64,000 nt of DNA, taken from Perkinsela sp. CCAP 1560/9 (lineage: Eukaryota; Protista; Euglenozoa: Kinetoplastea). The stretch covers positions 620,001 through 684,000 of the forward strand of contig CBFFSA010000005.1 in the NCBI GenBank assembly GCA_965644495.1, written 5' to 3'. The notes under the pieces were generated by a model. That model was not told where the DNA came from and made no database searches. It saw nothing but the letters and a program-made list of their open reading frames with translations. This document shows positions 34,501 to 63,899 of the stretch, one piece after another. A program made the position numbers and the translations under genes. How positions within the stretch are numbered: the stretch's first letter is position 1; every line of letters begins with the position of its first letter.

Positions 34501-35655
34501 TCCCTCGTAGGGGCGTAAACATTAAATAGCATACCCTTCCCTCCCTCAAGGGAATATTCAGCTCCCATAACCCTTCCACTCACCTTCCACACATTTCCTA
34601 GTAACCTTCGGCTAACGATAGCCATGCCGTTGTATGAATCCACGCTTGTGGCAGACTGAAGGTATACATGAAACCTATGTCCCAAATATTCGACCTTCCT
34701 ATAAATAATTCCATCCTCGTGAACATCCTTGGAAAATTTATACCTAGTTTCCTGTAAGCACATAATGTCGGCCCCCTTTTCTATCATGAAAGAGAATACC
34801 TCACAAAGACGAGTGCATCTTCGAAAGGAAAACTCGTCTTCCCCCTCAAGTTTTAGTGTCGTCACGTTCAGTGTGCTCACTGTCGTGTTTCTCCTCTCAG
34901 CGGAACCTCTAGGATTCTCCAATTGGCGTCGAGCATGCATGCCACGCAATGCCCGTGGTTTATGAGGGCTGTGACGGGCAGTTCTTCGGACCACTTTTTT
35001 AGGATGGCACACCTGCGCGGCACAGAGAACTACACCAGTAGAAGAAAAGGGGGGGAAATGGAGAGTTGTGTGCGGACGCTCCTCGTACCGCACGCGGAAT
35101 GCACCTGAACGACTTTCCGAGGAAAGCAATTCAGGATGCACCCCTAAAACACTCCCCGACCAAAGATAAAGTTTGCTACAGGTCTCGTATCTCCATACAA
35201 CACGAAGCGTTGACCCCAAGCGAGTAGTCTTACAGACTGCGCGCACCGCCCGCTGGCGGAGTTTAGCAAGCTCTTTCCCGACCGGAGGAAGGAAAACAAC
35301 TCCCCGAACACGCTTGGTCCGCAAAAGAGTTTCAACGGCCTCTGTCCCCTTCTGCGTGCCGGAAGCATCCGCCATATTTTTTATAAACGAATTATAAAGA
35401 ATGTGTTCATTATAAAAAATGTGTTCATTATAAAAAATGTGTTCATTATAAAAAATGTGTTCATTATAAAAAATGTGTTCATTATAAAAAATGTGTTCAT
35501 TATAAAAAATGTGTTCATTATAAAAAATGTGTTCTCCTGTCCCACCCTCTCTCTTTTTTTTTTTTTTTTATAAAAAATGTGTTCATTATAAAAAATGTGT
35601 TCATTATAAAAAAATGTGTTCATTATAAAAAATGTGTTCATTATAAAAAATGTGT
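31548..35655 (-). mobile_element. LINE family L1 with intact 5' end, several stops/frameshifts, 3'-truncated in RNase H
   Basis: ORFs 33918-35375 (MADASG N-terminal domain plus APE: TLNV, LQET, NVYAP, LDHI), 32940-33833 and 32458-32973 (RT, YADD), 31539-32288 (YIDGS RNase H start). Confidence 0.9.
35376..35655 (-). repeat. 18-bp tandem array (TTTTTTATAATGAACACA) at the 5' end of L1, in two blocks
   Basis: ~7 units at 35395-35532 and ~4.5 units at 35570-35655, separated by poly(A) and a 21-bp repeat of the flank. Confidence 0.95.
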
Positions 35656-36900
35656 TCTCCTGTCCCACCCTCTCTCTGAGAATAGCTCTCTCTGAGAATA
35701 GTATGACCCTGCTCGTTTTTTTTTCTCTACATATATACAAAATGCAAACCGTGTTTTTGGTGGCCAGCTGGCCACTTTTCGACGAAGCACAAACCGTATT
35801 TTTGGTGGCCAGCTGGCCACTCTTCCACAACACTCTCTTTTTATTTTTGTTTTTTAGCTGGCCACCCTTCCACAACATGGACAGCTGGCCACCCTTCCAC
35901 AACACGGCCAGCTGGCCACTCTTCCACAACACTCTCCCACCCCCGTGGGACTCACTCAGTGGACTCACTCAACGTGAGTCACTGCCCCACGTGGCAGTGC
36001 TCTGACTCTCTCACGTGCCACTGTAGGTACAGTGCCGATGCAGCCACTACCTTACGTGGCAGTACTCTCACTCTCTCACGTGCTACTGCAGCTGCACTGC
36101 ATCACTGCAGTCACTGCCTCACGTGGCATTGCCTCTCACTCTGCCACTGTATCTACACTGCGATTACTGCCTCACGTGGCAGTACACTTACTCTCTCACG
36201 TGCCACTGTATCTACACTGCAGTCGCTGCCTCACGTGACACTACTCTTACTCTCGCATGTGCCAATGCAGTTGCACTGCGATTACTGCCTCACGTGGCAG
36301 TACTCTCACTCTCTCACGTGCTACTGCAGCTACACTTCAGTCACTGCCCAACGTGGCACTACTCTTACTCTCTCACGTGCCACTGCAGCTACACTGCATC
36401 ACTGCAGTCACTGCCTCACATGGCAGTGCACTTACTCTGGCACGTGCCACTGCAGCTGCACTGCATCACTGTGCAATCACTGCCTCACGTGGCACTGCTC
36501 TCACTCTCTCAAGGGCCACTGTAGCTACACACTGTACCACTCGGACCTGCACATTATTTTTCTCTCTCTATATATATAAAATGCAAACCGTGTTTTTGGT
36601 GGCCAGCTGGCCACTTTTTTCAAGAAAAAAAAATCTGAAAAAAAAATCGTTCCGAATTTGTTTTTTTCGCGATTTTGAGCATATAATTTTTTTTGTTCAA
36701 AAATGTCGATGCCGGGAATCGAACCGCGGACATCCAGCGTCAAAATGGAACCCCTTTACCAACTGGACTACTCAAAGGACTCTCCTTAGTCAACCAGTTT
36801 GTCGTATCGCAGACCTTTGCAGACGCACTTTTTTTTACCAAAAGTGTTCTACAATTTGGGAAATGAGGTCTTTGTAGATGATTTTTCGAGTATTAAAGAG
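35656..36900. repeat. Composite satellite block rich in CAGCTG/CACGTG (27-bp units plus cacgtggca.tactc units), duplicated at 54760-56575
   Basis: ccagctggccacccttccacaacatgg and cacgtggcagtactctcactctctcacgtgccactgcag repeats, bracketed by direct repeats at ~35716 and ~36558. Confidence 0.9.
36704..36777 (-). pseudogene. tRNA-like sequence (A and B boxes intact, acceptor stem unpaired) followed by a T-run
   Basis: TAGTCCAGTTGG ... GGTTCGATTCCC-ggcatcgaca-TTTT; second copy at 56376-56449. Confidence 0.65.
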
Positions 36901-37028
36901 TTAAGGGGTGTCATGTTCTATATAAAATAACTAGCAATTGGTGAGCCCAAAACTAGCAAATGTATGTAAATTGTGCCGCTAACATGAAACAATAAAAATT
37001 AAAACAGAGAAACAAGCAAAACAAGCTA

Positions 37029-37215
37029 TTTTTTTTGAAGACCTTTGTTTTTTTGAAGACCTTTGCTTTTTTGAAGACCTTTGCTTTTTTGAAGACCTTT
37101 GTTTTTTTGAAGACCTTTGCTTTTTTGAAGACCTTTGTTTTTTTGAAGACCTTTGTTTTTTTGAAGACCTTTGTTTTTTTGAAGACCTTTGTTTTTTTGA
37201 ATATTCTTCAAAAAC
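37029..37215 (+). repeat. 18-bp tandem array (TTTTTTTGAAGACCTTTG, ~9.5 units) plus hairpin at the 5' end of L2
   Basis: Directly visible; ends tttttgaa-tattc-ttcaaaaa-c-ATG at 37216. Confidence 0.95.
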
Positions 37216-39689
37216 ATGGCGAAGGCGTCCGGGCCTTGCGAGAATAGTATAGTGAATCTTCTAGTACGGTCCACGTTAGGTCTGGGTGTCCTTTTTGAAC
37301 CAACTTTGGATTTTGATGGACATGCTAAACTTCGCCTGCGTACTGTGATGAGTATATGTAAAATTCTTCGTCCTGGAGACTGCATCGCGCTGTGCTGGCG
37401 ATATGCGGGGGCTGCGGAGTATCGGGTTTGTAGGGGGGATGTCACACATAGAGGTTATGGGTCTCTCTTTCAGCTAGGTCGCTGGCGGGTGAAATACTAC
37501 CGGCGATCGGAAACGCTTCCTTTCCCGCCGTATGACCCACGTATAGTGCTGTGTGGGGTGCGAATTCGGAAACCTCGACGTTCGAATACCCGAAAGAAAG
37601 TACGTAAAAATATGGCACTGTGTGGCAAGCATGCTCTTCGCGACAACGACCCTGAAGGGTCTGCTGTGAGGAAGTATTTATCTATAGGAACTCTTAACAC
37701 GACTTCGTTGAAACTTAAGGGCGACGACGTTTTCAGACTGAAAGCATCCTCCCGATTCCATGAAACATTGCGATATATGGCTCAGAAAGATTTGCATGTT
37801 CTGGCTTTAAAGTAAACAAGATTCTCTTTTACTTCTAGCGGTGGGTCTGACATTTTGCGCAGGCAACTACGGTACGGAGATAAACACTTTTTCATCTACC
37901 TTTTGTCGGCGGTGAATGGGTACAACGGTATGGGGTTTATCTCTCAGCATCCGTTTTTGAAGGTTTGGAAGGTGAGTGACAGGATCATGGGGGCCGAGTT
38001 TACTATAGAAGGGGGGTCGGCCTTTATCATGAATGTATACGGGCCGACGCGCGATTTTTCACAAGATGCAATGGAAGAGTTTGACATTTCTCTCACCACT
38101 GCGTTTCATGACGCAGTTGGTAAATATTCACGACGGCCAGCTCTTCTCCTTGGAGATTTGAATGCACCGCTCACTTTTAAAAATAAGACGGAAGAGGACG
38201 CGCTATCAATGGAAAGATTAGAAGGCCTTTTAGAAGGAATAAATTCTAAATCGGGGCACACCTTATGCCCAAGCCGCCGTAAATATACATGTATACTGCC
38301 GAACGATGCTAAGCGACAGCTCGATCACATTGCAGTTTGTTCGCGCTTTGCGTCTGCCCTACATAAACATCAAGTTTTTGGCGCACCAACACCAACTGTA
38401 CACTTTCTGGTGAGAGCCGAGATCAAGATCAAATGGAAAGTTTCCACAAATACCCACAGAAATAAGATTCCCTGGCTTCAACTTTCTAACCCAGAATATA
38501 GTGAAAAATTTGACAAACGAATCTGCGATCATGTCAATGGCGAACTGCACAACAAGGATTTCCCTTCCTGGGATCTTCTTGCCTCTTGCCTTCGATCGTC
38601 TGGCATGGAAATTCCAAAACCACAAAACAAAATATCTCTTGAAATCCATTCGCCAATGGAAACGCTTGAAGGAGCCGAAACTGGTTATTTGCGCAGAATC
38701 TTTGAGCTAAGCAGAAAGCATAAGGACTTCAATGAATTGGTTTTACAAACACAGGTGCCAATAGAGGAAGCAATAGCCAAATCATGTGATGTCCTGGAAA
38801 CTAAACTAAAGAAGAATCATGCCAGCCCATGGAGAGCTCTGAAAGAAATATGTGGATTTCATCGCGCCGATTTTAAGATTTCAGGGACCTGTAATAAACA
38901 AAAGCTGGCGGAAATCAAATCATTCTTCGAAGCCTTTGCGGGAGACGCCGGGGGGGACACGAATATAAAATTTCCTGAGGCCAAACCATCCCCTAACACG
39001 ATTAACGACTTCACTTTTACGGAAGAAGAGCTTCAAATTGGCATCTCACACTTTGGTATGGGAAAATCGCCAGGCAAAGACGAAATACCAATGGAAGCCT
39101 TGAAATGCATAGCTGGTAACGAGTTACTTCGAGATTGGCTGCTATGTGTCATAAACAGAGTTCACGATACCGGGATGGCTCCGGATGTTTGGGGTGATGT
39201 CTTAGAAGTTCCTATACCAAAAAAGGGTGATTTGGGTCTTCTTAAGAACTGGCGACCTATTTGCTTAGTGAATTGCATCGTCAAACTAATGAACAGTTTA
39301 ATCTTGCAACGAATGAGACCTTATGTGGAGCCCGTGCTTCGCGAGAATCAATATGGGTTTCGACCAGATCGCTCAACAACTCAAGCCCAGGAGATTCTCA
39401 ACGAAGCAAGAGTTAAAGCTTTGCGGGAAAATGGGCAACATTGGTTTCGTGGATTTTGCAAAGGCTTTTCCATCTGTTTCGTTTGATGCTATCAGGGCAT
39501 CTCTGGTAGCATTCCACATTGGCCCCAAGTTAGTAGAAATGATTATGTCGGTCTATCGCAATATGAGAGGCGTCGTTCGTACACTGTACGGGCTAACGGA
39601 AGCTTTCCCCATCACGACAGGAATTCTACAGGGCGACGTTCTCGCACCGTACCTCTTTGTTATGGTCCTGGATCGAATATTATTTAAGG
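37216..39689 (+). pseudogene. LINE family L2: N-terminal domain, APE and RT up to just after QGDVLAP, interrupted by L3
   Basis: ORFs 37216-37815 (stop at the catalytic QET position), 37855-39486 and the first part of 39323..; ends at MVLDRILFKA. Confidence 0.9.
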
Positions 39690-39778
39690 CAAAAGATCAA
39701 GTTTTTTGTAAAGATCAAGTTTTTTGTAAAGATCAAGTTTTTTGTAAAGATCAAGTTTTTTGTAAATTTATTTGCAAA
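39690..39778 (+). repeat. 18-bp tandem array (TTTTTTGTAAAGATCAAG x4) plus hairpin at the 5' end of L3
   Basis: KDQVFC x4 in translation; ttttgtaaa-ttta-tttgcaaaA(TG). Confidence 0.95.
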
Positions 39779-42745
39779 ATGGCGGATGCTTCCGGTGCAC
39801 GCATGCCCACTGCTATTATGAATCTTCTTGCGTGTTCCAAGCTTGATCGGGGGATTCTTTTCCGTCCTGCGAAGGGTGGAACGGAATGTGCTAAACTCCG
39901 CGCGAGGTCGTTAGGACGCATTATGCGACTGCTTTGTTTAGGCGCTAAGCTTGCGGTGGTTTGGAGGTACGCGGATTCATCGAACTACAGTGTTTGGGAG
40001 GGGGTAGTAGAGAGTTGGGTGCCGAGCCGCTGGCTTGTTCGCTACGCTCAGTGTTCGCGATTTACGCTTCCGTTCCCTCCATGTAGTCCTCACATCGTCC
40101 TCTGTGCTGCTCGGGTTTGTGCGCCTAAGCGTAGACGTCGTTTCAAAAAGCGCTCTCGCAAATACAGGGCACAGTCTGGCAAACGTGCTCTCCGTGACTT
40201 GGTGGGCCCTGGGGGCCCCGCTGTGAAGAGAATGTTGAGTGTGGGAACCTTGAACGTGACTACTCTTAAGCTGAAAGGTGAAGACGAGTTTAGCCTACGA
40301 AAGTGCGGACACCTTTGCGAAGTACTTGCCTTCATTGGTCTGAAGGGAATAAATATTCTGGGCCTGCAGGAAACGCGATTCAGATTCCCATCTTCTGAAA
40401 AGTCGGATGTCCTTCACCGCAAAGTACAATATCGGAACGCAGAGTTTCACTTGAACCTCATTCCAGCGCGCGCAAAGGATGCATACAATGGAATGGGATT
40501 CGTCAGCACTTTTCCCTTGTCTAAGGTATCTAAAACCAGTGAAAGGATTATGTCGGGTGAATTTGAGATGGAGGAAGGAGTCGCAACAGTTATTAACGTA
40601 TATTCTCCTACACGCGATTCTAAGGACGTCGAGGTTACGGAGTTCTACGGAGAACTCGAACGTTGCTGCTTGAGAATAAGGGAAAGCAACCCGCGTCGCC
40701 CATTAATTGTGCTGGGCGACTTTAATGCACCTTTGACACATATAACAAATAAGGATCTAGATCCCATTGCGGCCGCCCGTCTTAAAGGACTTTCTTGTTC
40801 TATAGACTGTAAGTCTGCGCACTGTCTTTGTCCAAGTAGTCGGAAATGGACATGCGAATTACCAAACAAAACTTTAAGGCAGTTAGATCACATATTTATT
40901 TGTAGCAGATTTGCATCGGCAATTCAACGACACAAAGTGATCAAGGCACCCATTCCTACTACTCACTGTTGTTTTATAGCCAGAATTAAAATTAAATGGC
41001 GAGTCAGTGATCCCAAAACGAATACGAATCAGCTCTCGTGGATTTCTTTTCGAAATAGTGAGGATAGGAAGAATTTCATCAATAAAGTTCACGACCAATA
41101 TCGAGCAACCTCGAACTCTTGTCGATCATGGAGCGCTCTCGCACAATATATGAAAAATGCTGTAAAAACTTTCAAAAAACCGACGAAACGAAATTTGAAC
41201 AAAGAAGCTGTAAAGGACTCAAAAATACATGATTTGCGCGGTTTATATCACAAGAGCAGAAACAAAAAGGTGTTCAACGCTCTCGTAATGGAGAATAAAG
41301 CGGAAGTTGAAGAGATTATTTCCGACGAATGCTTGGAGATTGAAAAACAGCTTCGTAAAAACCATTCAAACCCATGGAGAACGATTCGAAAGATATGCGG
41401 GCAATATCGTGATACCTTTAGCACGAACGGAAGCTCACGAAATGATAAACTTAACGAAATTCGATCGTACTTCATGAAATTTAGTGGCGCTGATGATGGA
41501 GATCCAAATCTTAGCTTTGAACTGCTGCCGCCGCCGTTAGTACCAATATCCGATGCAGCATTTACAAGCGAGGAGTTAAGCACATCTTTAGAACATTTCA
41601 GAAGAGGAAAAACACCGGGAAGTGACGGAATACCAATGGAAGCCCTTCAAGCTATAGCGGTCCACCCTGATCTGAGATCGCATCTCCTGAATATAATCAA
41701 CCAGGTACACGAAACGGGAGTCACAGAGGAAGCCTGGCGCAACACTCTTCAAATACCCATCCCAAAGAAAGGAGACCTCACTAACATTGAGAATTGGAGT
41801 CCTATACGCGTAGTAAATAGCGTAGTTAAGCTCATGAATCATATGATACTCTCCCGCATTAGACCCAACATTGAAAAGTCTCTTCGGGGTAACCAGTATG
41901 GGTTTCGACCTAACCGAGCGACTTCTGGAGCTCAGATTATCATGAACGAAATAAAAACCAAAGCATTCAGAGGACAAGGCCTTTCTGTAGCTTTTATAGA
42001 CTTTGCTAAAGCATTTCCTTCGGTATCGTTCGCTGCTATTAAAGCTAGTTTGCATGCATTTCGAGTAGGTCCATGTCTTTCTAAGATGATAATGTCTATA
42101 TACGATGAGCTGAAAGGCACTGTACGAACTTCTATTGGAATCACAAAACCTTTCCCTATCACTACAGGAATACTTCAAGGTGATGTATTGGCGCCTTATC
42201 TGTTCGTTATGGTGTTAGATAGAATTCTCAATAAAGCACTAGATGGAAAATCAGACGGGGTTCTTCTCAGCTCTAGGGGTACAAGAAAGCGGGGTCTTCA
42301 TGAAAAGCGCCTGAGTGACATTGAGTATGCGGACGATATAGCGTTATTTAGTGACACGAAGAGTGGTTTGACAAATATGATAGACAATGTAGCTGAAGAG
42401 TCACGCAAAGCTAATCTGAAACTAGCCGTCGGAGCAAACAAGACAGCCTGGTTAACTTTTGGTAAATCTCAAATGAGCAGCGAGAGCCTGAACAGCAAAT
42501 TCTCGGGGATGATTCCGAAAGTTACGTCTTACAAACACTTAGGGCATCGGCAGGAAAATGATTTTACATCTACAGTTAAAGATCGATTGAAACTAGCTTG
42601 GGGATCTCTCTTTCGAATGAATGGTATTTGGTCTTCACCACTTAGCCAGGAGACTAAGCTGCGCCTCTACGATTCAATAGTATCCGGTGCTAAACTTTGG
42701 GACAGGTGCACTTTCTATTTCAAAATCCATGCTCCGAAGAATTGA
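39779..42745 (+). CDS. LINE family L3 polyprotein: N-terminal domain, APE endonuclease and RT (frameshift near 42690)
   Basis: MADASG start; TLNV, GLQET, NVYSP, GDFNA, LDHI..TH (APE); PGSDG, QYGFR, DFAKAF, QGDVLAP, YADD, YKHLG. Confidence 0.92.
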   Translation: MADASGARMPTAIMNLLACSKLDRGILFRPAKGGTECAKLRARSLGRIMRLLCLGAKLAVVWRYADSSNYSVWEGVVESWVPSRWLVRYAQCSRFTLPFPPCSPHIVLCAARVCAPKRRRRFKKRSRKYRAQSGKRALRDLVGPGGPAVKRMLSVGTLNVTTLKLKGEDEFSLRKCGHLCEVLAFIGLKGINILGLQETRFRFPSSEKSDVLHRKVQYRNAEFHLNLIPARAKDAYNGMGFVSTFPLSKVSKTSERIMSGEFEMEEGVATVINVYSPTRDSKDVEVTEFYGELERCCLRIRESNPRRPLIVLGDFNAPLTHITNKDLDPIAAARLKGLSCSIDCKSAHCLCPSSRKWTCELPNKTLRQLDHIFICSRFASAIQRHKVIKAPIPTTHCCFIARIKIKWRVSDPKTNTNQLSWISFRNSEDRKNFINKVHDQYRATSNSCRSWSALAQYMKNAVKTFKKPTKRNLNKEAVKDSKIHDLRGLYHKSRNKKVFNALVMENKAEVEEIISDECLEIEKQLRKNHSNPWRTIRKICGQYRDTFSTNGSSRNDKLNEIRSYFMKFSGADDGDPNLSFELLPPPLVPISDAAFTSEELSTSLEHFRRGKTPGSDGIPMEALQAIAVHPDLRSHLLNIINQVHETGVTEEAWRNTLQIPIPKKGDLTNIENWSPIRVVNSVVKLMNHMILSRIRPNIEKSLRGNQYGFRPNRATSGAQIIMNEIKTKAFRGQGLSVAFIDFAKAFPSVSFAAIKASLHAFRVGPCLSKMIMSIYDELKGTVRTSIGITKPFPITTGILQGDVLAPYLFVMVLDRILNKALDGKSDGVLLSSRGTRKRGLHEKRLSDIEYADDIALFSDTKSGLTNMIDNVAEESRKANLKLAVGANKTAWLTFGKSQMSSESLNSKFSGMIPKVTSYKHLGHRQENDFTSTVKDRLKLAWGSLFRMNGIWSSPLSQETKLRLYDSIVSGAKLWDRCTFYFKIHAPKN

Positions 42746-43856: not shown

Positions 43857-43984
43857 TAAGAGTTGGGCGGAAGACGTGTTTCCACCAGCAGGTTCGGAAT
43901 ACCCTGAGGAAGAGTTCAGGAAGATAAAGGAAAAGTATTGTCTTTTTAAAGGAAAAGTATTAAAGGAAAATTGGATTGGATTGG

Positions 43985-44310
43985 GCGCGGCTCACTGATC
44001 TGAATTATGCTGACGATTTGCTCCTATTTGGGAGCGACAAGGAAGACTCATTTTTCATTCTCCTTCTGAAGCCTGCATGGGCGATATGGGGATCATGGTT
44101 GAACAAGCATTGGTCTAGGGAAAGAATCATACTGCATACGGATTCCTGGATAGTTTGGCATTTTGCAAATGTGATTAGAAAAAAGTATTATTTGATTGAT
44201 TTTGAAGGCCTTCCAAATAGCGATATATATTTGGATCTGGAACACGCTTTTCGAGGCTTAGAAGCGCGTAGTGTGCAGCTTTTTGTTTTTAAGGTGAAAG
44301 GTCACTGCGG
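43985..44310 (+). pseudogene. Internally deleted LINE remnant (YADD followed by RNase H), probably the rest of L2
   Basis: RLTDLNYADDLLLF then IILHTDSWIVW...FKVKGHCGN. Confidence 0.7.
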
Positions 44311-44322
44311 AAATTTCTTTTT

Positions 44323-46719: not shown

Positions 46720-47946
46720 CTATTTTCCACTGTACATTTCTTGTTCCACTGTATTTCTTGTTCTTCGCTCTTTTGCCCATACCGCTTCTACCGATTCCCG
46801 GCTGACGATCTGAGCAAGTTCCGTACGAGACAGTTCAGGAGGTGTTTCGAGACCTGGAGTTGCGCACTGAATCATCCAACGGCAAACGAATAAAGCACAG
46901 TCATTGGTGCCATCATCTTGCACCAAGGTTGAGCCCTGTATAATCTACCAGCCATGTGCTCCGTGAAAGATATTTTGCGCAACAGTTTGCACATCTAAGA
47001 GCACTTCAGTTCTTCTCCTCGGATTGTGGTTAGGCAGGGAATCGAACCAAAGTAACTTTCCGCCTTCTTTATTTTCATGCGGTACGATAACACATAGAGC
47101 GAAGTGTTGATTGAAAAAGAATGGAACGGCAGTGCGGTCAGCCAAGAAAATTCTTGTTCTTATTTCTGCCGGTAAATCCCCTACTGATGTGGCATATCTC
47201 TTAAAAACCGTAGTTGCCACAGAACTATCCAATACTTGATATCTTTCAGACGGGCTTGAAAGTACTGAACCTAAAGTGTTTATAACTGTGTCCGGTATAA
47301 ATTGTCCAGGTTGTGTCCACTGATTGTCTTGCGTCCGATCTTTTAACTGGGGTCGCGTGTAAGTTTCAGTTTCGCGCGACATAGTGTATTCCCCCTTTCT
47401 TTGCAGTTTCTTTTTCTTAGATGGCGGAGGGCAACGGTACAGAGTTTTTTCAGGTACGTGTTTTTCATTGCCTTCCTTCTGCGTCATACGTTTCACGAAT
47501 TTCGAAACGTCGGCGTTGGGTCGCAAGTTTTCCAAGTAGCTAAAGCCTCCATCACTTCTTTCAGGGAGTAACCAAAGTTGACTCACACTTTTTACTCTTG
47601 AGAGGGCCACGTACACCGAGGCATGACATAACATCGTGCTGTGATAGCATGTTGGTCTGCGGTTCAAGTCTATGCAGACATTTTCTGTAAGAGTAGCTCC
47701 CTGTACTTTGTGAATGGTGTAAGAGAAGCCGCACCCAATTTCAAGCTCATCATCAACATCACTTTTTCGAAATTCAGCGGAAAGATTTCCGTCTACTGTT
47801 GAGGCCGAGATGCCAGCTATTGAGAAGGCTGTGCAATCCAAAATTTTACCAGGCCTTCCATTTTCTTTAATGTATGAGCTTAATTCTTCTTTGGTCTTCT
47901 CGTTCTTTACAATGATTTCATCTTCAACCATTAGCGTACCATTCAC
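46720..47946 (-). pseudogene. Helitron RepHel C-terminus: PIF1 motifs V/VI followed by a Ulp1/C48-like cysteine protease
   Basis: FSYTIHKVQG..VYVALSRV; HFALCVI...WFDSL; after a stop, QDDGTNDCALFV (H-D-Q-C order). Confidence 0.8.
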
Positions 47947-49814: not shown

Positions 49815-49874
49815 TGATGATATGCGAACTCTCGCAATAGTGGCGTCGTAAAGGTAAAAATTTAAGAACTCAAG

Positions 49875-52227
49875 TTATGTGCCTCGAAAGTAATAGTCCA
49901 GAGCCTTACTGCACATTTCAGTAGACCCATCATCCCTTACAATCACATCAGAGAGGCCTTCATTATCTGATATTTCGCTATCAGTCTCTGTTTCGTCTTC
50001 CTGTACTCCTGAAACGCCTTTGACCATTAATTTAGATGCCTGCCGTACATCCAAGTAGGAAACTATATGGCTGCATTCTTCCGACTCATAACCAAGGCAG
50101 CAATACATGGCCAGCTGGGCCGACACTTCTTGCATTCCTAGTTGACTATTCCCAAGCCTATTGCAGAGCAACGTGTCTGCTGAACTCTCGTGCGATCTTC
50201 GGCTTCCGTATTTTTCTTTGTGTTTTGCTGCTTGAACTGCCACAATACAAGTATTGATATCAAGCAAGTTTTTGGACAAATATTTAAAAAGATAGAAAGT
50301 AGTTATCGCTGCAACGCAAGCTGATCCGAGAAAAACAACATTTGTATTGAATCCCAGGAGGCAGGACATGATCGAATTGTATTCTGCAGTATTTTTATCC
50401 CTTGATGATATCTTAGGCAAGTACAATAGAGGGCGAAAGTCGGGTGACATATAACCAAAGAAAGAGGGCTCTGTACTTTCAGCACGGGCCGCCATATTTT
50501 CTGAAAATGTTTTTGCCACTACTTTTCCTGGTGTAGAAATTGATTGTTCTAACGAATAAAAAGCATTCAATGGCGTAACCTGGCGTGGGTATGCATATCG
50601 GCATTTTGTTGGCGCTACACCTATATTTTTGAAACATTTCTCCGTATGCACATGCTGTTGCACAGTTGATGCAACTCGATGCTCTCTGATATCCATTGCT
50701 TTCTGATTATCGAATGGCGGGCATGCCTCTAACCCCACTCTTCCCCCGACGCTTCTCGTATCTCCTTTATCCCACGGCACGGAAACCGTCAACCAATCAG
50801 AAACTAATTGGCTTATACTGTTTCTTTCTGATTCCATATGAATCTTTTCGGAAGCATACTCAGCGAGAGGGATGCCCCATAGAACAATATGCATATGCAA
50901 ATTTCCTCTACCTTGTGTCTCAACCAAAAAAAAAAAAATCCAAATCATTCCGGATTGCTCCGGATGGTCACTGGCAAGACAGACCCTTCACAGACAGATT
51001 TGGAAGTTCCGAGGCCGACGTCCTCTACCAGTTTCCGCTTGTCCAAGGCGGCACCAACGTGATGTTGCCAACTCGCTGCGTCGACGAACTGTACGTCAAC
51101 ACGGCTTACCCAAGAGGTGCAAGCCGGGTAAGGGAGCTGGTTCCCTGAGGGGAGGGTCCGGGACGGTCCTCCGAGTACTGGGCCTAGTCGGTTATCAGCC
51201 CAGCCTCTTAGAGTGAGGCCGCCGGGAATATTGCGATGAGCGGATTTGAACTCGCCGTCTGAGCACATCAGGAATGATATGTAGACCTTCGCGATACATC
51301 TTTGAGTAGTCGAGCGTTGCAGGGCCGTAAAGCTCCTTACTGATCCCACGACACGGAAACCGTCATCCAATCAGAAACTAATTGGCTTATACTGTTTCTT
51401 TCTGATTCCATATGAATCTTTTCGGAAGCATACTCAGCGAGAGGGATGCCCCATAGAACAATATGCATATGCAAATTTCCTCTACCTTGTGTCTCAACCA
51501 CCCCAAACATTCCCTTCATAATCTTGAAAATTCCAACGGGTATTTCTTCTGAAATAGCACTGACCGATTGGCCTGATTTTTTAAATCGTTTGTGCGGGAC
51601 TACACCAAATATCGTGGTAAGTAACGCATCAATAATTAAATGAAATGTTTGCGCTGCATATGCAGGGTGATCTCGCACTTTTTGTACTCTTTGGTACGCA
51701 TCGTCAATTAGAAAATCCTCTTGCACGCTTTTTGAAGAGGCGCATAGGTATTTCAGGGTAATTTTCATATCTGGATCGCATGGGGATACGGTGACGTAGA
51801 GTGTCGGATGGCCCATGAACCCATGAATTGCCACCATTTGTTTAAAGCACGCATTCCGAGCTGCGTCGGAAAATGGAACATCACGAGTTACAATATGCAG
51901 GACATTGCATGCTTCCAACAGAAGCTTACGATTTTCCTTTCGTTGAGGGTCCTTCTGTGCCTCCTTCAACTGCACAATTATATTTTCTTTTTCCAAAAGT
52001 TTCTTTGCTTTTTTCCACATATTGGGCTTGACCCTCACACTTCGAGCTAAGGAATGGCGCCTGATTTGATCCCAATGTAAGAAACCAAAATTTCCGTTTC
52101 TGCACCAACGAGGGTCTTTTTGCAACAACAAATGCTTCAGGCCGCTGTCAGGAGTAAGGGGGCGCTTTAGGAGATTGGCAGACGCTTCAGAAAGAACTGG
52201 AAAAAGATATGGAAACCCCATTCCCAA
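49875..52227 (-). pseudogene. Helitron HUH Rep domain interrupted by a SINE
   Basis: FPYLFP, GHPTLYVTVSP (motif 1), VETQGRGNLHMHIVLW (HUH motif 2), QQHVHTEKC..CRYAYP, YLFKYLSK (Y2 motif 3). Confidence 0.9.
50927..51346 (-). mobile_element. SINE S1 variant flanked by a ~155-bp direct duplication
   Basis: 50772-50926 is repeated at ~51346-51500. Confidence 0.85.
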
Positions 52228-52363
52228 AATTTTGTCATTCTCGTTAAACTCGTTAGCTGCACTTGTAAAGTGAATTCTGGCATGGTGCCTTCTTTGGTCA
52301 TTACCTTTTATGAGGTTTGTTAGTCTTTCGACTATCTCATCCTCAGCATTTCGTTGGGGAGGT

Positions 52364-53374
52364 TCACATAGTAAAACGTTTTCTACCTCCGGCTTTTCTT
52401 CTTCTATTAGCGTTTCGTTTATGAGCTAATAGTGAAGCTGCCACTGAAATGGCATTGTTGACAACAGTTGCTTCTTCAAGTATTCTTTTGCTTTCGTTCA
52501 CCAAATCCTCTATTCTCTGTTCCGATATGTGAATATCTGAGTAGAATACATTGTGTTCTTTAAGAAAATAAAGCCAAGCTCTTGTAGCGTCAGCCCGAAC
52601 AGAGAAATATGCCTGTAGGGGAGCATCTGTTTCAGCTTTCCTTTTTGTTTGTTCACCGACAAATGTCACAAACACCCTCTGTTCAGTAGCTGGAAGAATC
52701 TGAGCTATGTCCTGAGGTCCTGTTGAAAACAATGAAATAACATGATTTCGAAATTTTTTCTCAAAATTCCGCTCATGACGAATTTCACAGAGCGTCTGGA
52801 AATTCAGAATACGGCATATGGCCGATCGTTCGACAACTCCCAATGTTGGCAAACGGAGATCTCTTAAATTCAGACCAAAGTCCCAGTCGTTCTTAAACGA
52901 AAAGTATGGGATGCCTCCTAGTCTAACGCGTTTCCTGCAACGAGAACACGAGCGCAACTCAGTACCAAACACCGCCTCCGAATCTATGCAATACACATTT
53001 CCACCTATCGAAGACGTGTGTTTTCCTTTTAAGTTTGCATCCATGCTAGCACGAAGCATGTCACGGTCTTTTACAGGGATTCCTTCCAAAATCTCATGGG
53101 AAGGTTCAATAACCCCACACACGCCACACGACGTAGCTTTAAGCTCTGTATTCCTTTGGAAAATATGAAAACATTCAGCTTTTTCTTCAGACGTGCAAGG
53201 CTTCAATTCCTGCTTCCAATCCTTTGGAAACATTGGTGATCCCTGTAAAAGCCTTTTTTTTTTTGCAATTAATAAGGGGAGAGAAGTATGAATCGCGGCA
53301 CTGCCTCTATATTTTGACCCAGTAGACGAACCAAGTAGGTCCATTGGGGTGGAATACGAGTTGAAAACAAGCAA
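52364..53374 (-). pseudogene. Helitron N-terminal region (DUF6570-like, Cys cluster)
   Basis: CGVC...CSRC..IPYFS..NDWDFG..LPTL..VE..AI...HVIS...WLYFLKEHNVFY; lies directly upstream of the Rep domain. Confidence 0.75.
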
Positions 53375-53966
53375 TCAAATTAGCAATTCTTTTTCTTTCC
53401 ACAGATGTACCTTTTTTTTGTAATTAATAGGGTGGAAGAGTATGAGTTCTAACTTTCTATGAATGTACGGTATCACTTTCTTACTTACTTTCCTACTTAC
53501 TTTACTTCGCCCTTATCAACTTCGCCCTTATCAACTTCGCCCGCTTCTCTCCCTTATCTCCCCCCCCCCAAAGAAACCATCCGCGACTTCCCGACTTCAC
53601 CCGCTTCTTTCCCTCACTCCCCCCCCCCCGAGCATCCATCCGCGCCTTCCAAACTTTGCCTTCCTCTTTCTCTCACTTCCCCCCAGAGTACCTTTTTTTT
53701 TTCTTTTTTTGCACAAAACTAGCAATTTAAGCACCCCTAAGTATATACTACAAACAAGAAACAGTAAAAGTTTTTTTTTTTTTTTGCAAATAATTGGGGG
53801 GAATAGTATTGAGTTTAACGTTTTTATCTACTTTTCGAACACTTTCGCTTTTTTTTTTTAATACCAAACTAAATAAATGAAATCTCTAAACAAAACAAAC
53901 AAATCATATCTCATAATATAAATATTATGTGCCCCGAAGGGCCATTATATCAATCATCCTAAATTT

Positions 53967-54356
53967 CTAAACATGCAGTTTCACGTTTTCCAGTGAAGCA
54001 GCACCTCTATATTTGCAGCAGGAGCATCTGAACACTCGCCTGCTAGGTAAGAAAAGCACCTTTCTATGGGATTTGTTATACGTTGCTAAGAAGGCTCTAA
54101 TTTGATGAGATTCCCCTTTCTCATGCCGTTGAACGTTCTTTCTCACTACTTCAATATTGCAAACATCGCACATGTAAAGTGCAACGTTAACGCTTCCTTC
54201 TACTTTCTGAACATCATACATTTCCTCACCATCTTTGCAATGCTTCTCCCGCATGTGCCGCTTCATATTTCTTTGCAAACTAAAGCATCCGCAAATATTG
54301 CAACGTACTTTTTGACTCTCGTGAGACGACAGGTGGGTATGTCTCTTTTTCGGCAT
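53967..54356 (-). CDS. Small C2H2 zinc-finger protein, probably a Helitron accessory/upstream ORF
   Basis: CNIC-x12-HMREKH, CDVC-x11-HEKGESH and a third CSCC...H. Confidence 0.6.
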   Translation of the reverse strand: MPKKRHTHLSSHESQKVRCNICGCFSLQRNMKRHMREKHCKDGEEMYDVQKVEGSVNVALYMCDVCNIEVVRKNVQRHEKGESHQIRAFLATYNKSHRKVLFLPSRRVFRCSCCKYRGAASLENVKLHV

Positions 54357-54759
54357 ACCAGAGGAATAAAAAAAAGGTTTGAAATTACTCTAGCACGAAA
54401 TGCCGCTCGATTACTGTACCTGAACACACTTCAACCTCGTAAACGCCAACTTCACTTTTCATACATTGTCAAACCATACAAAATTTCAAATTCCTTTCAT
54501 GGCAGTCTTCCTCCAAAAGTGGCTTTTTCACTACTAATACAGTAATGATTCAATTTCCTACTTGTACCACTATAGTGAAGTGTCTTAGCTCGGGCGGCGG
54601 GGTGCGCTAAGCCCCAACACTACTAGCCTAAATCATCAACCAAAGCTTTCAAAGTATGCTAGCAGTGCCCCTGGCCGGAGTGATTCTCTTTCTCTTTCCT
54701 TTATTTCTACCGCCCACCTTTCCACGCCCTTCTTTTTCTACACATCCTCGCTCTGTGTC

Positions 54760-56575
54760 TCTCCTGTCCCACCCTCTCTCTGAGAATAGCTCTCTCTGAG
54801 AATAGTATGACCCTGCTCGTTTTTTTTTCTCTACATATATACAAAATGCAAACCGTGTTTTTGGTGGCCAACCTTCCACAACATGGCCAGCTGGCCACCG
54901 TTCCACAACATGGCCAGCTGGCCACCCTTACACAAATTGGCCAGCTGGCCACCCTTACACAACATGGCCAGCTGGCCACCGTTCCACAACATGGCCAGCT
55001 GGCCACTCTTCCACATCATGGCCAGCTGGCCACCCTTACACAACATGGCCAGCTGGCCACCCTTCCACAACATGGACAGCTGGCCACCCTTCCACAACAT
55101 GGACAGCTGGCCACCCTTCCACAACATGGACAGCTGGCCACCCTTCCACAACACGGCCAGCTGGCCACTCTTCCACAACACTCTCCCACCCCCGTGGGAC
55201 TCACTCAGTGGACTCACTCAACGTGAGTCACTGCCCCACGTGGCAGTGCTCTGACTCTCCCACGTGCCACTGTAGGTACAGTGCCGATGCAGTCACTACC
55301 TTACGTGGCAGTACTCTCACTCTCTCACGTGCTACTGCAGCTGCACTGAATCACTGCAGTCACTGCCTCACGTGGCATTGCCTCTCACTCTGCCACTGTA
55401 TCTACACTGCAATCACTGCCTCACGTGGCAGTACACTTACTCTCTCACGTGCCACTGTATCTACACTGCAGTCGCTGCCTCACGTGACACTACTCTTACT
55501 CTCGCACGTGCCAATGCAGCTGCACTGCGATCACTGCCTCACGTGGCAGTAATCTTACTCCCTCACGCGCCACTGTAGCTACACTGCAGTCAATGCCTCA
55601 CGTGGCACTACTCTTACTCTCGCACGTGCCACTGCAGCTACACTGCATCACTGCCTCACGGGGCACTGCTCTCACTCTCTCACGTGCCACTGTAGGTACA
55701 GTGCCGATGCAGTCACTGCCTCACGTGGCAGTACTCTCACTCTCTCACGTGCTACTGCAGCTGCACTGCATCACTGCAGTCACTGCCTCACGTGGCAGTA
55801 ATCTTACTCTCTAACGTGCCACTGTAGCTACACTGCAGTCACTGACTCTCTCACATTCCACTGTATCTACACTGCATTCACTTCCTCACGTGGCAGTAAT
55901 CTTACTCTCGCACGTGCCGCTGCAGCTGCGCTGCATCACTGCAGTCACTACCTCACGTGGCACTACTCTTACTCTCTCACGTGCCACTGCAGCTACACTG
56001 CATCACTGCAGTCACTGCCTCACATGGCAGTGCACTTACTCTCGCACGTGCCACTGCAGTTACACTGCATCACTGCAGTCACTACCTCACATGGCAGTGC
56101 ACTTACTCTGGCACGTGCCACTGCAGCTGCACTGCATCACTGTGCAATCACTGCCTCACGTGGCACTGCTCTCACTCTCTCAAGGGCCACTGTAGCTACA
56201 CACTGTACCACTCGGACCTGCACATTATTTTTCTCTCTATATATATACAAAATGCAAATCGTGTTTTTGGTGGCCAGCTGGCCACTTTTTTCAAGAAAAA
56301 AAATTCTGAAAAAAAAAATCGTTCCGAATTTGTTTTTTTCGCGATTTTGAGCATATAATTTTTTTTGTTCAAAAATGTCGATGCCGGGAATCGAACCGCG
56401 GACATCCAGCGTCAAAATGGAACCCCTTTACCAACTGGACTACTCAAAGGACTCCCCTTAGTCAACCAGTTTGTCGTATCGCAGACCTTTGCAGACGCAC
56501 TTTTTTTTACCAAAAGTGTTCTACAATTTGGGAAATGAGGTCGTTGTAGATGATTTTTCGAGCATTAAAGAGTTC
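54760..56575. repeat. Expanded second copy of the satellite block, with the tRNA-like sequence at 56376-56449(-)
   Basis: Collinear with 35656-36900 but with more 27-bp and CACGTG units. Confidence 0.9.
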
Positions 56576-58282: not shown

Positions 58283-58408
58283 GCACATTGATAATGCATA
58301 TTAAGCGGCACATTGATAATGCATATTAAGCGGCACATTGATAATGCATATAGCACATTGATAATGCATATAGCACATTGACCTTCAGAATTTTATTTGA
58401 CCTCCAGA

Positions 58409-58618: not shown

Positions 58619-58721
58619 ATTGTTACCGGTATCAAGCGTGCTTCCGCCCTGGAGAGGTCTTCCTGAGAAATCGGTGAGCCGATTTGCTTTTTCCATGGCC
58701 GGAAATTTAGGCCTATGGTAA

Positions 58722-59090
58722 CGTGAGGGGAGGGTCCGGGACGGTCCTCCGAGTACTGGGCCTAGTCGGTTCTCAGCCGAGCCTCTTTTGGATGAGGCCG
58801 CCAGGAATATTGCGATGAGTGGGTTTGAACTCGCCGTCTGAGCACCATGTGCTTCAAACTTTGGCCACATGCTGAGGCACTCGACCGCTTTTCGCGAGCT
58901 TGTTCAATGGAATACTAAAGAGAGAACACAAAGTATTTCCCCCAGTGAGGCAAGTTTAACGATCTAGGTATTACGCTCGAACAAGCTCTTGTTTACTCCC
59001 AGGATCGAGAACACTGGCAAAAGCTTTGTGACAATCTCCGACAAAAACTTGAGCCTCTTCCGGAGTACGAAGTATTACGGTCTTCGAAAT
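58722..59090. mobile_element. Partial SINE S1 (-) joined to a short LINE fragment (+)
   Basis: 58722-58862 matches the S1 5' half; 58863-59090 encodes GHMLRHS...DLGITLEQALVYSQDREHW. Confidence 0.75.
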
Positions 59091-59143
59091 CGGGAACGAA
59101 ATCGGGCACGGCGAATTAACCTACGCTTCCTCCTCCCGCGAAA

Positions 59144-62100
59144 GTAACCAACCAACCAACCAACCATCACTGGGATAATAAATTAATATGTCCCAGTTGA
59201 AAGCTTCACAAATTTCTCCTACCCATAAATCACTTTGGCGGTGTCCACAAAACTAACATATTCACCAGAATCTTTTCAAAAACATCTTGCAACAACTTCC
59301 ATGTATCCTAATCATTCGAGGTGGATGGCGTTCCAGTACTTAGTCAAAGAATTGTGATATGAAATCGACTTTTCATTTTCAGCACAAACGGTTTACCTAA
59401 TAAAACATTTTCACGCGAAACAACAGCATACCACCTTATCACACTATCCCTCACCTGTTCAGAAAATGCGATCAAGGGGGGTATGAGGGGGGTACCATTT
59501 CTTTGGTGTTCGTAATACGTTCTTAGTTCGCGATCTATCGTCTTTCCCCTGACGCTTTTCTGTCTTTTTGACGCAGTTCTCTCTTTTACTGGGTGTTTTT
59601 TGACGTGACCCCTTTGTTTCCAGACTTTCATAGCTTGGCTCATCATTCTCCTGGTATAACTGATTACTCCTCTTTCTTTGCGGAGCTCTAAATTTAACCC
59701 GATCACTAATAACAATACGTGCTACATGAGGCAACTGTTGATTTGACTCAATGTATTTTAGCCTTTTTGTGTTGTTGGACTGTACGCGTTCTTGTGATCT
59801 TGTGCGTTTCGTTTCCGTTTCTATCTCTGTATGTTTGCCTTTGCTAACTGTCCTACTTTTTGGCAATATTTTTACGTGCTCACCATGGGTGCATATTTGG
59901 CTAGAGGTTACCGATTTAAGTTTGCGCTGCATTTTGCTGCCATTAGAATCACCATTGGTATGGTTTTTGCGCTTGTCTTCTGCATGAGGAATCTCGCCGT
60001 AGAATCTCAAGGCCTTTTATCCCTTGCTTATTTTACTTGCTTGTTTAGCCACCCAGTCTGCCATATAATTATGTGGATTTTCGTTATGCGCTTTAACTTT
60101 TACGCAGTAGAAGCGCTTTGTCCCTCTTAGCGAAATATATGTTTCTTGCAATTTCTGAAGTATAGCGCCTCCCTCAAACGATTTAAATCCTATGAATCTG
60201 AACCTATGGATAGCTCCATGAAAGAAATCCCAAACATACTCAGAGTCCGTGTGCAAAATGACATCTCCATCGTAGGACAATGCGATGAGAAGAGCCTCGT
60301 GCGCGGCAAAGGATTCTATTTCTTGAATAGATTGAGAGAATTCATGAGGAGGTTTTAACCCAAGAGATATAGAGGGCTCGCGGCGGCGTAGGCAGACTAC
60401 CCCACAGCCTGTGTGAGTTTCATCCTTTTTAACGATTCGTGCTCCATCTGTATAAATGTGTGTTTCATTTGGCCCGATTGGAAATGGTTGCTGCCCTTCT
60501 TCAATGTATTGTAGGGTTTCGTAGCACCCCTTGTTTACCCCCTTTACCAAAAGATTTTCCCATAGTTTTGAAGTTGTTTTAGTGTACGAGGGCCTGGGTT
60601 CAAGCTGATTTTGAAGAATTTCAAGTTTCTTGCACCATTGAGACCGATTTTGACCAAGTTTTAGAATCTCATACGTCAGAATGTAACTCTTTTGCACATC
60701 TTTCTGATAGCGAGGGCTTGGAACTCTCATCATTCGTTCTCCATAGTACGGCAGTTACGAATGGAGTAGGGTGACGAATAAGGTGGCCTACTAGCGAGGC
60801 ACGTTGCAATTGTATCACAGTATTGGGCTTTAGGTCAGTGGGGTAAAGAGAGTCTACTCTGCAATGCGCCTCTTTCGAGCACTTGACTCCCAATACGACC
60901 CTCCTCATTCTGTTCATTTGGACTTCCACTTCATGTAGCTCTTTCTGATTTAAATTCCAAGTCCCTGGATTATAGTAGACCACTGATTGAACGAGGGACT
61001 TAAAGATGTGTAATTTTCTTTTTGGTGATATAGTAGAACCCCATATGGCTTTGAGTTTGCGCATTATTGCACAACCTAATCGTACACGTTCTTGTGAGTT
61101 TGAGCTGCGATCCTCCTCGTTCTGAGTGCTACGCAAGTAGCGATAAGATGTAACTTTTGGTATATCGCCGAGTGTCGCTACTTGCAGAGGTCTTCCATCA
61201 TCCTTAACTTTACCTAGTGTCATCCATGCCGTTTTGTTTGGTCCGACATTTATTTTCAAATTAGCTTTTTCTGCGGAAGTTTTAAGTTTGTGCAACATTG
61301 TGCTTAGCTCCTCCTTGGATTCGGAGAAGAGAACTATATCATTCTTCTTCTGTATGGTGTTTTCACGTGCGATATGAGATTTTGATAAATACACATGATC
61401 GTAGAACTGAGATTTTCAGAAATATCTAAAGCACGTAATGTCTCTTTTATCGCAGCGAATGATAATGAAGGAAAGGCTTGTTGAAAGTCGACGAAACAGA
61501 CGAACACCCCAGCCCCTCGGCGCGATTTTTCCATTATTTCTAAAAACGTTGCCTGAGCGCCAGCTGTTGAGCGGTTAGGTCGAAATCCGAATTGATTCCC
61601 GCGAAGCGAACTTTCCACTGCTGGTTGTATTCTGTCTAAAATGATTCGATTCAAAATCTTCACTACATGATTCACAAGACAGATTGGTCTCCAATTTGTG
61701 AGTGAGCGCAAGTTACCTTTCTTTGGCAATGGGACCTGCAATATCGATTTCCAAGATTCATCCGCTTTTCCGGTTTTTCGTACTTCGTTCATTATATCCA
61801 GGAGAGCATTACGCAAGTCTTGATCAGCTGAAATAGCACGTAGAGCTTCAACCGGGATATTATCATCGCCTGTAGCTTTTCCTGACTTAATCTTTACCAT
61901 CGCAGCAGTTAGTTCCTCCACTCGAAATTCACCATCATCAATTTTTGCCAGTCGTTTTGGTGCAGTAGGTAAACTTATTGCTTCATGACCTTTGTAAGCA
62001 CTACCCCCTACCATGCTGAAATGATTCTTCACTATATTAAGGCTGCTGTTTACCGTAGTTGAAAATAGCGGAAAATCTTGCTTCTTGTCCCCTACAATTT

Positions 62101-63756
62101 TTCGAATTGTTCTGTACGCGGATTTTGGAGTTGATTTAAGCTCTTTTTCCAGGGCGTCGCACTCATTTATAATAGAGGAGTCTAGTTTTTCAGAGAATTC
62201 TTTTGATGCAGTAGCAAACATAGTTTTATTGCCCACGATCTTCAGCAGAGACTTCATGACAAATCCGGATAGATCTGTTTCAGCATCAATGCGAATTTCT
62301 TTTGCGTTACTAGTTTTATTGGGAAGACTAGATGCGGACACTCTAACAGCAGAAGAGAGTCTTGTCCAAGATATTTCGCTGGCCTTATCTATTTCCATTT
62401 TTGGCGCGTTTTCGGACTTCTCATCCTCCGACCGAATTCTTTTTGGCACAGATTTTAATGATTCCTTTACTTTCGAAACAAACTTATTTCGGATTTCATC
62501 ATTTTTCAATGCCTCCCAAAAAGGCTTTTGTTGAGACAGTTTTTGATTTTTCCATCGAAAATTGAAGTTCGATGTCAAAGCACAATGTCTGGTAGGTATG
62601 GGTGCGATGTGGCATTTTGTGGATCGTATAGAAGAGAAAAACCTTTTGTTATCAACGATGTGGTCAAGTTGCTTGGTCATTCCCTCTGGATGCCGACGAG
62701 TTTTAGGAAACCTATACGTCCATTTTCTTCTTGCACAACAGCCTTCATGCACAGATTGAGCTCCAAGCGAGCATAGTAGCTTTCGTAACTGTTTTGCACG
62801 CTTTGTATAACATTTCCTCCCCCCTGGGTTTAGTAGCGGCGAATTTAGATCTCCACTAATGATTCTTACCATACCATCATCTTCATAACATGCATCGAAT
62901 AAGTCTTCGTCAAAACTTTGTTGCGTCGATTTGTTAGCTTTCGCTGTAGGTGAATAGACGTTGTAAATGCAGGCTTTCGTTTCACCTAGAATGAAGTGTC
63001 CACTCATAATGCGATCGCTAATCTTCTGAACAGATAGAGGTTTAGTGCTCAAAAATGCCATGCCATTGTACCCGTTGATTGCACTCATCAGGTAGAGGTG
63101 AAGTGAGATGCCGTTTAAAAAGAGCTGCCTATGTAAAATAGAATCCTTATCATCAAATTTTAACCTTGTTTCCTGAAGCGCCATGATGTCAACATGTTGA
63201 CTCCTCATGAGACCTGCCACTTGATATAGTCTAATCGACTTCCGAAGCGTGAAAGTATCAGTCGCTTTGACTTTCAAGGTGTCCACTTTTAGGGTACTTA
63301 TCGTAAAACCCCCTCTCTTAGCATTCTTCTCGGATCCCTGACCCCGGTAGCCACTTCGAGGACAGTTGGTGCGTTTCCTATTTCGTTTGGATTTCCATTT
63401 TCCCAAGAAACCTACCCTACCACCCAGAATTTGAACTCGTTCATCTTTCGGAGGAAACAGGAAAAGGCGATCATCCACTAAATCATACTTCACTAGACGT
63501 CTACCGTCCGGAAGCATAGATTTAACAGTCCCCTCCCACAACCTCGTACGTAAATCATATGACATACTCCAGGCAACAGCAGAGCGTTTTCCAGGAGACA
63601 AAAGACATGACATTCGAAACAGGTCCCGCGGCCGGAGTTTGGCTACTCCCCATTTCCGCTTTTTAGGTAGAAACAGGTTTCCCCGACAACACGTGGCCAA
63701 TCGGAGTTTTTCTTTGACCGCCAAGAAACCCCAAAAGGTCCGGACGCCTCCGCCAA
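59144..63756 (-). mobile_element. LINE family L4, near full length, with an internal deletion removing QG..YADD; (GGTT)n tail
   Basis: ORFs 61334-63724 (N-terminal domain, APE, RT), 60669-61394 (thumb), 60017-60733 (YTDG, HTDS, KAH RNase H); tail aaccaaccaacc at ~59146-59166. Confidence 0.88.
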
Positions 63757-63899
63757 ATTATTATTAATTGCCATTAATAAAAATTGTTATCTTAATAAAA
63801 ATTGTTATCTTAATAAAAATTGTTATCTTAATAAAAATTGTTATCTTAATAAAAATTGTTATCTTAATAAAAATTGTTATCTTAATAAAAATTGTTATC
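63757..63899 (-). repeat. 18-bp tandem array (TTTTTATTAAGATAACAA, ~7 units) plus hairpin at the 5' end of L4
   Basis: LIKIVI x7 on the plus strand; sense strand ttattaat-ggca-attaataa-taat-TTGGCGGAGGCGTCCGG. Confidence 0.95.

Follow-up and report, generated by a model that had tools for sequence, protein, structure and literature searches.

The 64-kb window analyzed here (contig CBFFSA010000005.1 of Perkinsela sp. CCAP 1560/9, positions 620,001 to 684,000) contains four long interspersed elements (LINEs), labeled L1 to L4, each of which is preceded by a tandem array of short units whose last unit opens a predicted self-cleaving ribozyme of the hepatitis delta virus (HDV) type. Taken together, the evidence suggests that this ribozyme probably discards the array in each generation and that the reverse transcriptase (RT) of the element rebuilds it at insertion, by repeated jumps on a remnant of the 5' end of its own RNA. 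On balance, the clade appears to join a new class of ribozyme to an RT that processively writes tandem repeats without an alignment repeat, yielding kilobase arrays at every insertion.

In terms of domain architecture, the window LINEs code for one open reading frame (ORF) with an N-terminus of ~150 residues followed by an APE (apurinic/apyrimidinic endonuclease) domain, an RT domain and an RNase H domain, the APE and RT being recognized by the Pfam models PF03372 and PF00078, respectively; the D-E-D-D residues of the RNase H are intact. They display target-site duplications (TSDs) of variable length and simple-repeat 3' tails, features of APE-type non-LTR (non-long-terminal-repeat) retrotransposons, to which they belong. 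The coding region of L1 is split into several ORFs and has lost its 3' end, the ORF of L3 has one frameshift near 42690-42745, and L4 has a probable GGTT-repeat 3' tail at 59146-59165. Further, the N-terminus contains a conserved small β-barrel spanning residues ~40-120 of the ORF (39899-40138, forward strand), with invariant W-G-Y-FPP residues and a basic linker after it. A fold search with this domain recovered Tudor/KOW/WYL-like folds (best Z 5.9) and no specific match; it is a candidate binder of the RNA 5' end. Across the entire window, perfect tandem repeats of 17-19 bp are confined to the starts of the four LINEs, where the arrays, hairpins and shared motif described in the initial annotation are all found again (Table 1).

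A predicted HDV-like ribozyme at the array boundary

When the end of the array is set mechanically at the point where its periodicity stops, the last unit starts with a G in 23 of 26 family representatives. The first six bases from this G (hereafter G1) pair with a stretch about 90 nt downstream, within the ORF, which is followed by GG. This pairing constitutes helix P1 of a nested double pseudoknot with the helices in the HDV order, i.e., P1, P1.1, P2, P3 and P4, and with a catalytic C followed by a conserved A in J4/2. Covariation was assessed on 27 representatives, drawn from the host as well as from five other contigs; as these are kin to one another, their pair counts do not amount to independent events. 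P1 is paired at 155 of 162 positions, as against a mean of 102 (standard deviation 4.8, maximum 123 in 10,000) with shuffled partners and 33-72 when the strands are slid by 1-3 nt. The P1 partners were first located by a search that itself demanded pairing; placed later by sequence anchors alone, they pair in 124 of 135 cases at the five variable positions. P3 is fully paired (108/108), P1.1 is paired in 52 of 54 cases, inclusive of one compensatory U-A pair, and P2 in 145 of 162, while P4 is present as a variable stem that was left out of the counts. The catalytic C is found in all 27 representatives and the C-N-A-A pattern in 24. A predicted HDV-like fold of ~150 nt is supported by this covariation, and self-cleavage immediately 5' of G1 is, on account of the fold, very probable. 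With a cut before G1, the transposition RNA would have the unit as exactly its first 17-19 nt, and the parental array would be removed; in 23 of the 26 representatives, the unit is indeed G1 plus the 16-18 nt downstream of it.

The predicted ribozyme is 152-160 nt long and overlaps the coding sequence, with the conserved ASG, RG and AKLR codons supplying ribozyme bases. HDV-like ribozymes typically have a short loop L3 (a part of the ribozyme, distinct from element L3) with a U-G reverse wobble. In this clade, instead, loop L3 bears an inserted helix of 19-57 nt, mostly in multiples of three bases, and the U after P3 pairs with an A in 26 of the 27 representatives. P1 comprises 6 bp with a G1-C pair, as compared with about 7 bp in HDV-like ribozymes (PMC3774820), and a search of Rfam found no match to the element ribozyme. 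The ribozyme of element L2 has a private G-to-T change in P1.1. If active, these sequences would define a structurally new HDV-like class, with a helix in loop L3, which doubles as coding sequence; they provide a large natural covariation set for this architecture.

This framework reassigns several features of the initial annotation. The hairpin is the P1.2 helix in J1/2 and not a template boundary, and helices of this type are known to speed such ribozymes (PMC4908430); taking the hairpin loop as the unit boundary suits many families but fails for L091, L105, L041 and L042. The conserved start motif is not a translation start, there being no ATG at that place in the element at 63756, but the 5' strand of P2 and P3 together with the beginning of loop L3. 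Nor is the proposed T-run skeleton universal, as the arm of two families contains CCT and shows compensatory changes.

Arrays across the genome, at target sites and in relatives

The 21-Mb assembly, which carries tandem intronless HSP90 genes whose domains best match Trypanosoma and Leishmania HSP83, contains 159 matches to the N-terminus and about 100 to the conserved 5' nucleotide pattern (14 for a reversed control). Of about 100 5' ends, 92 loci were read, with the units at each counted by tolerant repeat matching: two or more units occur at 67 of the 92, five loci are truncated inside the ORF, and about 20 of the ~87 copies reaching the 5' end have one unit or less. The units are family-specific. 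The length of exactly 18 bp claimed for the window LINEs holds for all four of them, but genome-wide it is 17, 18 or 19 bp (18 in 20 of the 26 family representatives), and the range of 4-10 copies gives way to one of 1 to >300. In the family of the element at 39779, for example, copies that are 5-23 nt apart in 2.2 kb (>99% identical) carry 4, 45, >215, ~290 (to the contig end) and >330 units. Natural copies whose frames are open and intact are present on contigs C8 and C24.

TSDs of 9-18 bp enclose the array in 12 copies, nine of them multi-unit, and the 3' tails are family-specific short repeats (TTGGA, TG, TATG, ATAGG, TGT). The empty site of the L3 insertion is represented by short-read contigs of other samples, in which the L2 RT gene is uninterrupted and which show no array, merely a 9-nt microhomology to the unit. 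Additionally, arrays are present in short-read contigs of three other samples, and the element was found in no RNA run.

Upstream, the array starts within -3 to +2 of G1 in 37 of 59 junctions tallied by hand (p~4e-6 against a uniform distribution); a second set of junctions alone gives 9 of 16 (p 0.05). Full-length copies with one unit (L087, L108, L123, L124, L144) begin at G1. Among the copies that have no more than one unit, about half no longer possess G1 at their junction (L009, L088, L101, L103, L104, L126, L137, L145); a multi-unit array gives up only its outer unit, and would thereby buffer the first bases of the ribozyme.

Several loci bear on how the arrays arise. Read from element L1 outwards, window positions 35534-35676 hold eight units, a copy of the 20-nt target, an A-run, five further units and again the target. 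This target recurs at 35534-35553 and is found once, without an array, in the intact Helitron at 54761-54780; alternatively, a further insertion, with a poly(A) tail, could have hit this site. Locus L149 has the TSD sequence three times over, in alternation with partial units. At L097, the proximal unit and every one of the 26 visible units have a P1 variant that is absent from a sibling with three differences in 480 nt. Gains or losses of one A are located at the unit junction and not in the longer T run (L003, L004, L005, L073, L093, L100). The 17-nt form of the unit is seen in three short-read samples and in none of six proximal units; the independent short-read contigs exclude an assembly artefact as its source. 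Finally, L004 contains a duplicated ~600-bp block inside its array, and L015 and L136 likewise show higher-order repeats. A recurrence in L004, AAGG followed by 18, was initially viewed as a state machine, a notion that was dropped because the pattern lies partly within the duplicated block.

Beyond the host, relatives of the ORF with about 35-38% identity (best hits) were recovered from six unrelated metagenome contigs. Their 5' starts carry 18-bp arrays in L035, L041 and L042 and a 19-bp array in L043, while the unitigs of L039 and L133 begin at a 19-bp repeat boundary. The relatives and the window elements form one clade in the tree (100/99), and no array was detected in the three sister elements whose DNA could be read, a small sample. 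L043 has a complete ORF that lacks the RNase H, and L133 has no RNase H detectable by Pfam, yet both possess a 19-nt unit, which rules out an element-encoded RNase H as the obligatory ruler of unit length.

Some further peculiarities of individual arrays were noted. That of L015 (C46:55298-56790) is old and degenerate and, with about 15 units to its higher-order repeat, represents an array in transition to a satellite. At the distal ends of L022 and L151, from two families, the outermost unit is an aberrant short form with its first three bases fused to the T run. The elements L025 (C2:959450-965589) and L090 (C1:3269240-3269810) lie in or beside the array of another family in opposite orientation, and arrays may be preferred AT-rich targets. 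For the L2-family array (37030-37201), the word depth in run X3 exceeds that over the element body by a factor of thousands and lies far above that of the other samples; very long or free arrays are possible, with the caveat that summed contig depth is not a copy number. In the relative L035 (4400-4486), a GAT-repeat tail is immediately followed by a different 18-bp array, which suggests a second element in tandem. In the array-less sister L131 (1210-1290), the 5' region is structured and includes a GC-rich complementary pair of 7 bp; it may be a different ribozyme.

A proposed mechanism and its rivals

Under the proposed mechanism, the element would be read through from upstream, and the ribozyme starting at G1 of the last unit would cleave itself from this transcript; the transposition RNA would then begin with exactly one unit, the parental array having been discarded. 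After target-primed reverse transcription reaches G1, the RT would continue rather than stop, and would make repeated jumps onto a 17-19-nt remnant of the 5' end of that RNA, landing at the remnant's 3' end; the length of the remnant would be set by the footprint of the RT on the hybrid, with trimming by the RNase H of the element or the host. This remnant would be copied head to tail, zero to hundreds of times, before being joined to the upstream end of the target, and long arrays could be reshaped later by duplication at the DNA level. In functional terms, the array is likely to act as a disposable buffer, which would protect G1 and P1 from the loss of a few bases at the junction, and as a fixed leader for cleavage. 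Of the parts of this proposal, de novo synthesis of the array at insertion is likely, whereas the chemistry of jumping on a 17-19-nt remnant stands at an even balance. Repeated jumps of this kind are favored by the conjunction of the interleaved target copies, the variant filling the L097 array and the one-A variants placed at unit junctions with the known behavior of the R2 RT, which jumps from template to template end to end, aided by 1-2 added bases (PMC8594491, PMC8857657). The idea, advanced in the initial annotation, that each insertion rebuilds the array through reiterative copying of the RNA 5' end by the RT is the most likely reading and is supported, together with the mobility of the array, although not in the realignment form discussed below.

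Several observations weigh against this proposal. The ribozyme has a non-canonical loop L3, with its inserted helix and U paired to A, a P1 of only 6 bp and no counterpart in Rfam, and its activity is predicted. The two array-bearing relatives without an RNase H, L043 and L133, leave the RT footprint plus a host nuclease, or some other device, as the ruler. Some memory beyond one fixed remnant is required for the long blocks with 18-17-18 or 18-19 switches, such that several templates, a circle or later growth of the DNA would have to be invoked. The duplicated block in L004 indicates that DNA-level growth contributes, and de novo synthesis cannot be told from cleavage at an upstream unit by the start phase alone.

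The last of these points leads to an account in which arrays are inherited on the RNA, with the ribozyme cutting at the G1 of any unit and the arrays regrowing by slippage or unequal exchange of DNA. Such inheritance would explain the starts at G1 and the arrays within TSDs; it also draws on the DNA-level change evident from the higher-order repeats of L004, L015 and L136 and on three siblings that share one 17-nt variant, and cleavage at a duplicated P1 has been proposed as alternative P1 use in R2 (PMC3774820). Nevertheless, it is unlikely: passage through RNA can only shorten arrays, whereas siblings 0.2-1% apart range from 1 to >300 units, with switch points that differ (about 14, 19 and 134 units). 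Moreover, target copies are interleaved with unit pieces at two junctions (35534-35676 and L149), an entire array takes on a new P1 variant in one step, and the unit length is fixed at 17-19 from G1 in seven sources. The block-wise 17/18/19 states and the long error-free runs would follow if a 17-19-nt piece, either the remnant of the 5' end or a unit that the ribozyme had set free by cutting twice, its ends being 5'-OH and cyclic phosphate, were circularized and reverse transcribed as a rolling circle, which needs neither overlap nor an RNase H of the element. There is, however, no evidence for circles, templates from the parental array would not follow a new variant of the proximal unit, and interleaving with target copies requires jumps anyway, rendering this version quite unlikely.

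The same outcome of long perfect arrays could be reached if the cDNA realigned on an A-B-A' repeat in an RNA holding about 1.5 units, after the manner of telomerase or DRT10; this is the form the initial annotation had given to the process. Most units end in A, and hence 1-2 nt of pairing would be possible. Against this, the periodicity stops one period after the G in 23 of the 26 representatives, leaving zero overlap past one G1-phased unit, the G in question is position 1 of the ribozyme and thus the predicted 5' end of the RNA, and the one-unit copies start there. As DRT10 needs an A-B-A' template (PMC12632851) and there is no repeat beyond one unit, this route is unavailable, making realignment very improbable. 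Extremely improbable, too, is that the arrays are pre-existing satellite targets, monomer promoters, trans-splice signals or assembly artefacts. The location of L025 and L090 in another family's array, the kinetoplastid-like host and the breakage of some contigs within arrays speak for this group, but the arrays are specific to their family and pair with a strand that belongs to their own ORF; they are enclosed by TSDs, are missing at the empty site and recur in the short-read contigs of the three other samples. The monomer-promoter and trans-splice readings of the initial annotation are likewise unneeded and fit poorly, the unit of one family having no AG; a promoter or splice role may be a secondary one. 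A telomeric role was also considered for three contig ends (C1, C5, C22) that lie in arrays; as these are in both orientations, they are regarded as assembly breaks. No run of eight TTAGGG was found anywhere in the assembly, and no match to the TERT RNA-binding domain, an uninformative control.

Relation to known systems and other features of the window

The clade resembles ingi/L1Tc or R2 in its predicted RNA processing and telomerase or DRT10 in its repeat outcome. Like the ingi/L1Tc elements of trypanosomatids, it couples APE, RT and RNase H in a single ORF (except for the two relatives devoid of RNase H), generates TSDs and resides in a kinetoplastid-type host. In ingi/L1Tc, a 5' HDV-like ribozyme, L1TcRz within Pr77, similarly frees the RNA from a co-transcript (PMC3185411, PMC4035085, PMC12278014). 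However, whereas the 77-nt Pr77 holds the whole ribozyme ahead of the ORF, the ~150-nt ribozyme of the present clade, judged by its geometry, overlaps the ORF and has P1.2 and the loop-L3 helix; its tails are short tandem repeats in place of poly(A), and 5' arrays are not described for ingi in those three papers. The protein searches brought up no named ingi sequence. In R2, an HDV-like ribozyme also sets the 5' end, and occasional duplications and extra-template jumps are found at 5' junctions (PMC3774820, PMC11331408); its RT jumps end to end in vitro. Unlike the clade, R2 is site-specific and uses a restriction-like endonuclease, and its duplications, which are of the target ribosomal DNA, are rare and short, and do not form regular arrays of its own first 17-19 nt. 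With telomerase and bacterial DRT10, the clade would, judging by its genomic products, have in common an RT that makes long tandem repeats on a short template of RNA (PMC12632851), but theirs is a separate noncoding RNA with an A-B-A' repeat, as opposed to an element's own 5' end without overlap, the product of which is integrated.

A variable number of tandem units at the 5' end of a LINE is also characteristic of the 5' monomers of rodent L1 and the modules of Dictyostelium TRE5-A. Those are promoter modules of ~200 bp, present in few copies and carried on the RNA, whereas the units of the clade are 17-19 bp long, number up to hundreds and lie upstream of the predicted self-cleavage site. 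By its RT motifs, the clade may belong with the RTE/RTEX/Proto2 group, its tree neighbors being unnamed. This group has in common with it the APE-RT combination and tandem-repeat 3' tails, and HDV-like ribozymes have been reported in RTE elements (PMC6765202); in contrast, the sister rows in the clade tree have no arrays. No reiterative 5' arrays in LINEs came to light in searches of the open literature, and the mechanism is probably undescribed.

The completion and protection of 5' ends in non-LTR elements is poorly understood, and this clade seems to use a self-made, disposable repeat buffer. If the arrays are written by the RT, a retrotransposon enzyme would produce long tandem repeats with no alignment repeat such as telomerase has. 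This would be relevant to the telomerase-retroelement question and to the origin of minisatellites, and it would add a third way in which RTs write repeats to those of telomerase and DRT10. One possible use would be as a repeat-writing enzyme.

Table 1. LINE features in the 64-kb window, by element
Feature	Position	Strand	Details
L1 target sequence (Helitron copy)	35657..35676	-	directly upstream of L1
L1 distal array	35554..35657	-	5 units, ends in A-run; second target copy between distal and proximal arrays
L1 proximal array	35391..35534	-	8 units of 18 bp, phased at G1
L1 predicted HDV-like ribozyme	35255..35408	-	G1 35408, P3 35366, P1' 35311-35306, catalytic C 35266
L1 coding region	31539..35375	-	N-terminal beta-barrel, APE, RT, start of RNase H
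L2 array	37030..37201	+	about 9.6 units of 18 bp
L2 predicted HDV-like ribozyme	37184..37335	+	G1 37184, catalytic C 37325
L2 coding region	37216..39697	+	APE and RT, broken within RT by L3 insertion
L3 array	39692..39766	+	4 units of 18 bp
L3 predicted HDV-like ribozyme	39749..39901	+	G1 39749, P1.2 hairpin 39758-39779, P2 39782, P3 39788, loop-L3 helix 39794-39838, P1' 39843-39848, P1.1 GG 39849, catalytic C 39891
L3 ORF	39779..43856	+	small beta-barrel, APE and RT domains, RNase H (D-E-D-D residues present)
L3 3' tail	43971..43985	+	TTGGA repeats
L4 array	63774..63899	-	7 units of 18 bp, first base exactly G1
L4 predicted HDV-like ribozyme	63632..63791	-	G1 63791, catalytic C 63642
L4 body	59146..63756	-	broken; APE, RT, RNase H-like ORF

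Apart from the LINEs, the window contains a broken Helitron-like element at 46945-55200 on the reverse strand, with a DUF6570 domain, Rep-like ORFs and a PIF1 helicase; Helitrons are not among the four clades of transposable elements listed for trypanosomatids (PMC12278014). Several LINE copies are inserted in the repeated flanks of this element, one of which also harbors a minisatellite of 59/67-bp units (35977-36530). Elsewhere, a 341-bp unit is present in five copies at 10693-12394, and a short element with 12-13-bp C-rich repeats at 55226-56201 has many copies across the window.

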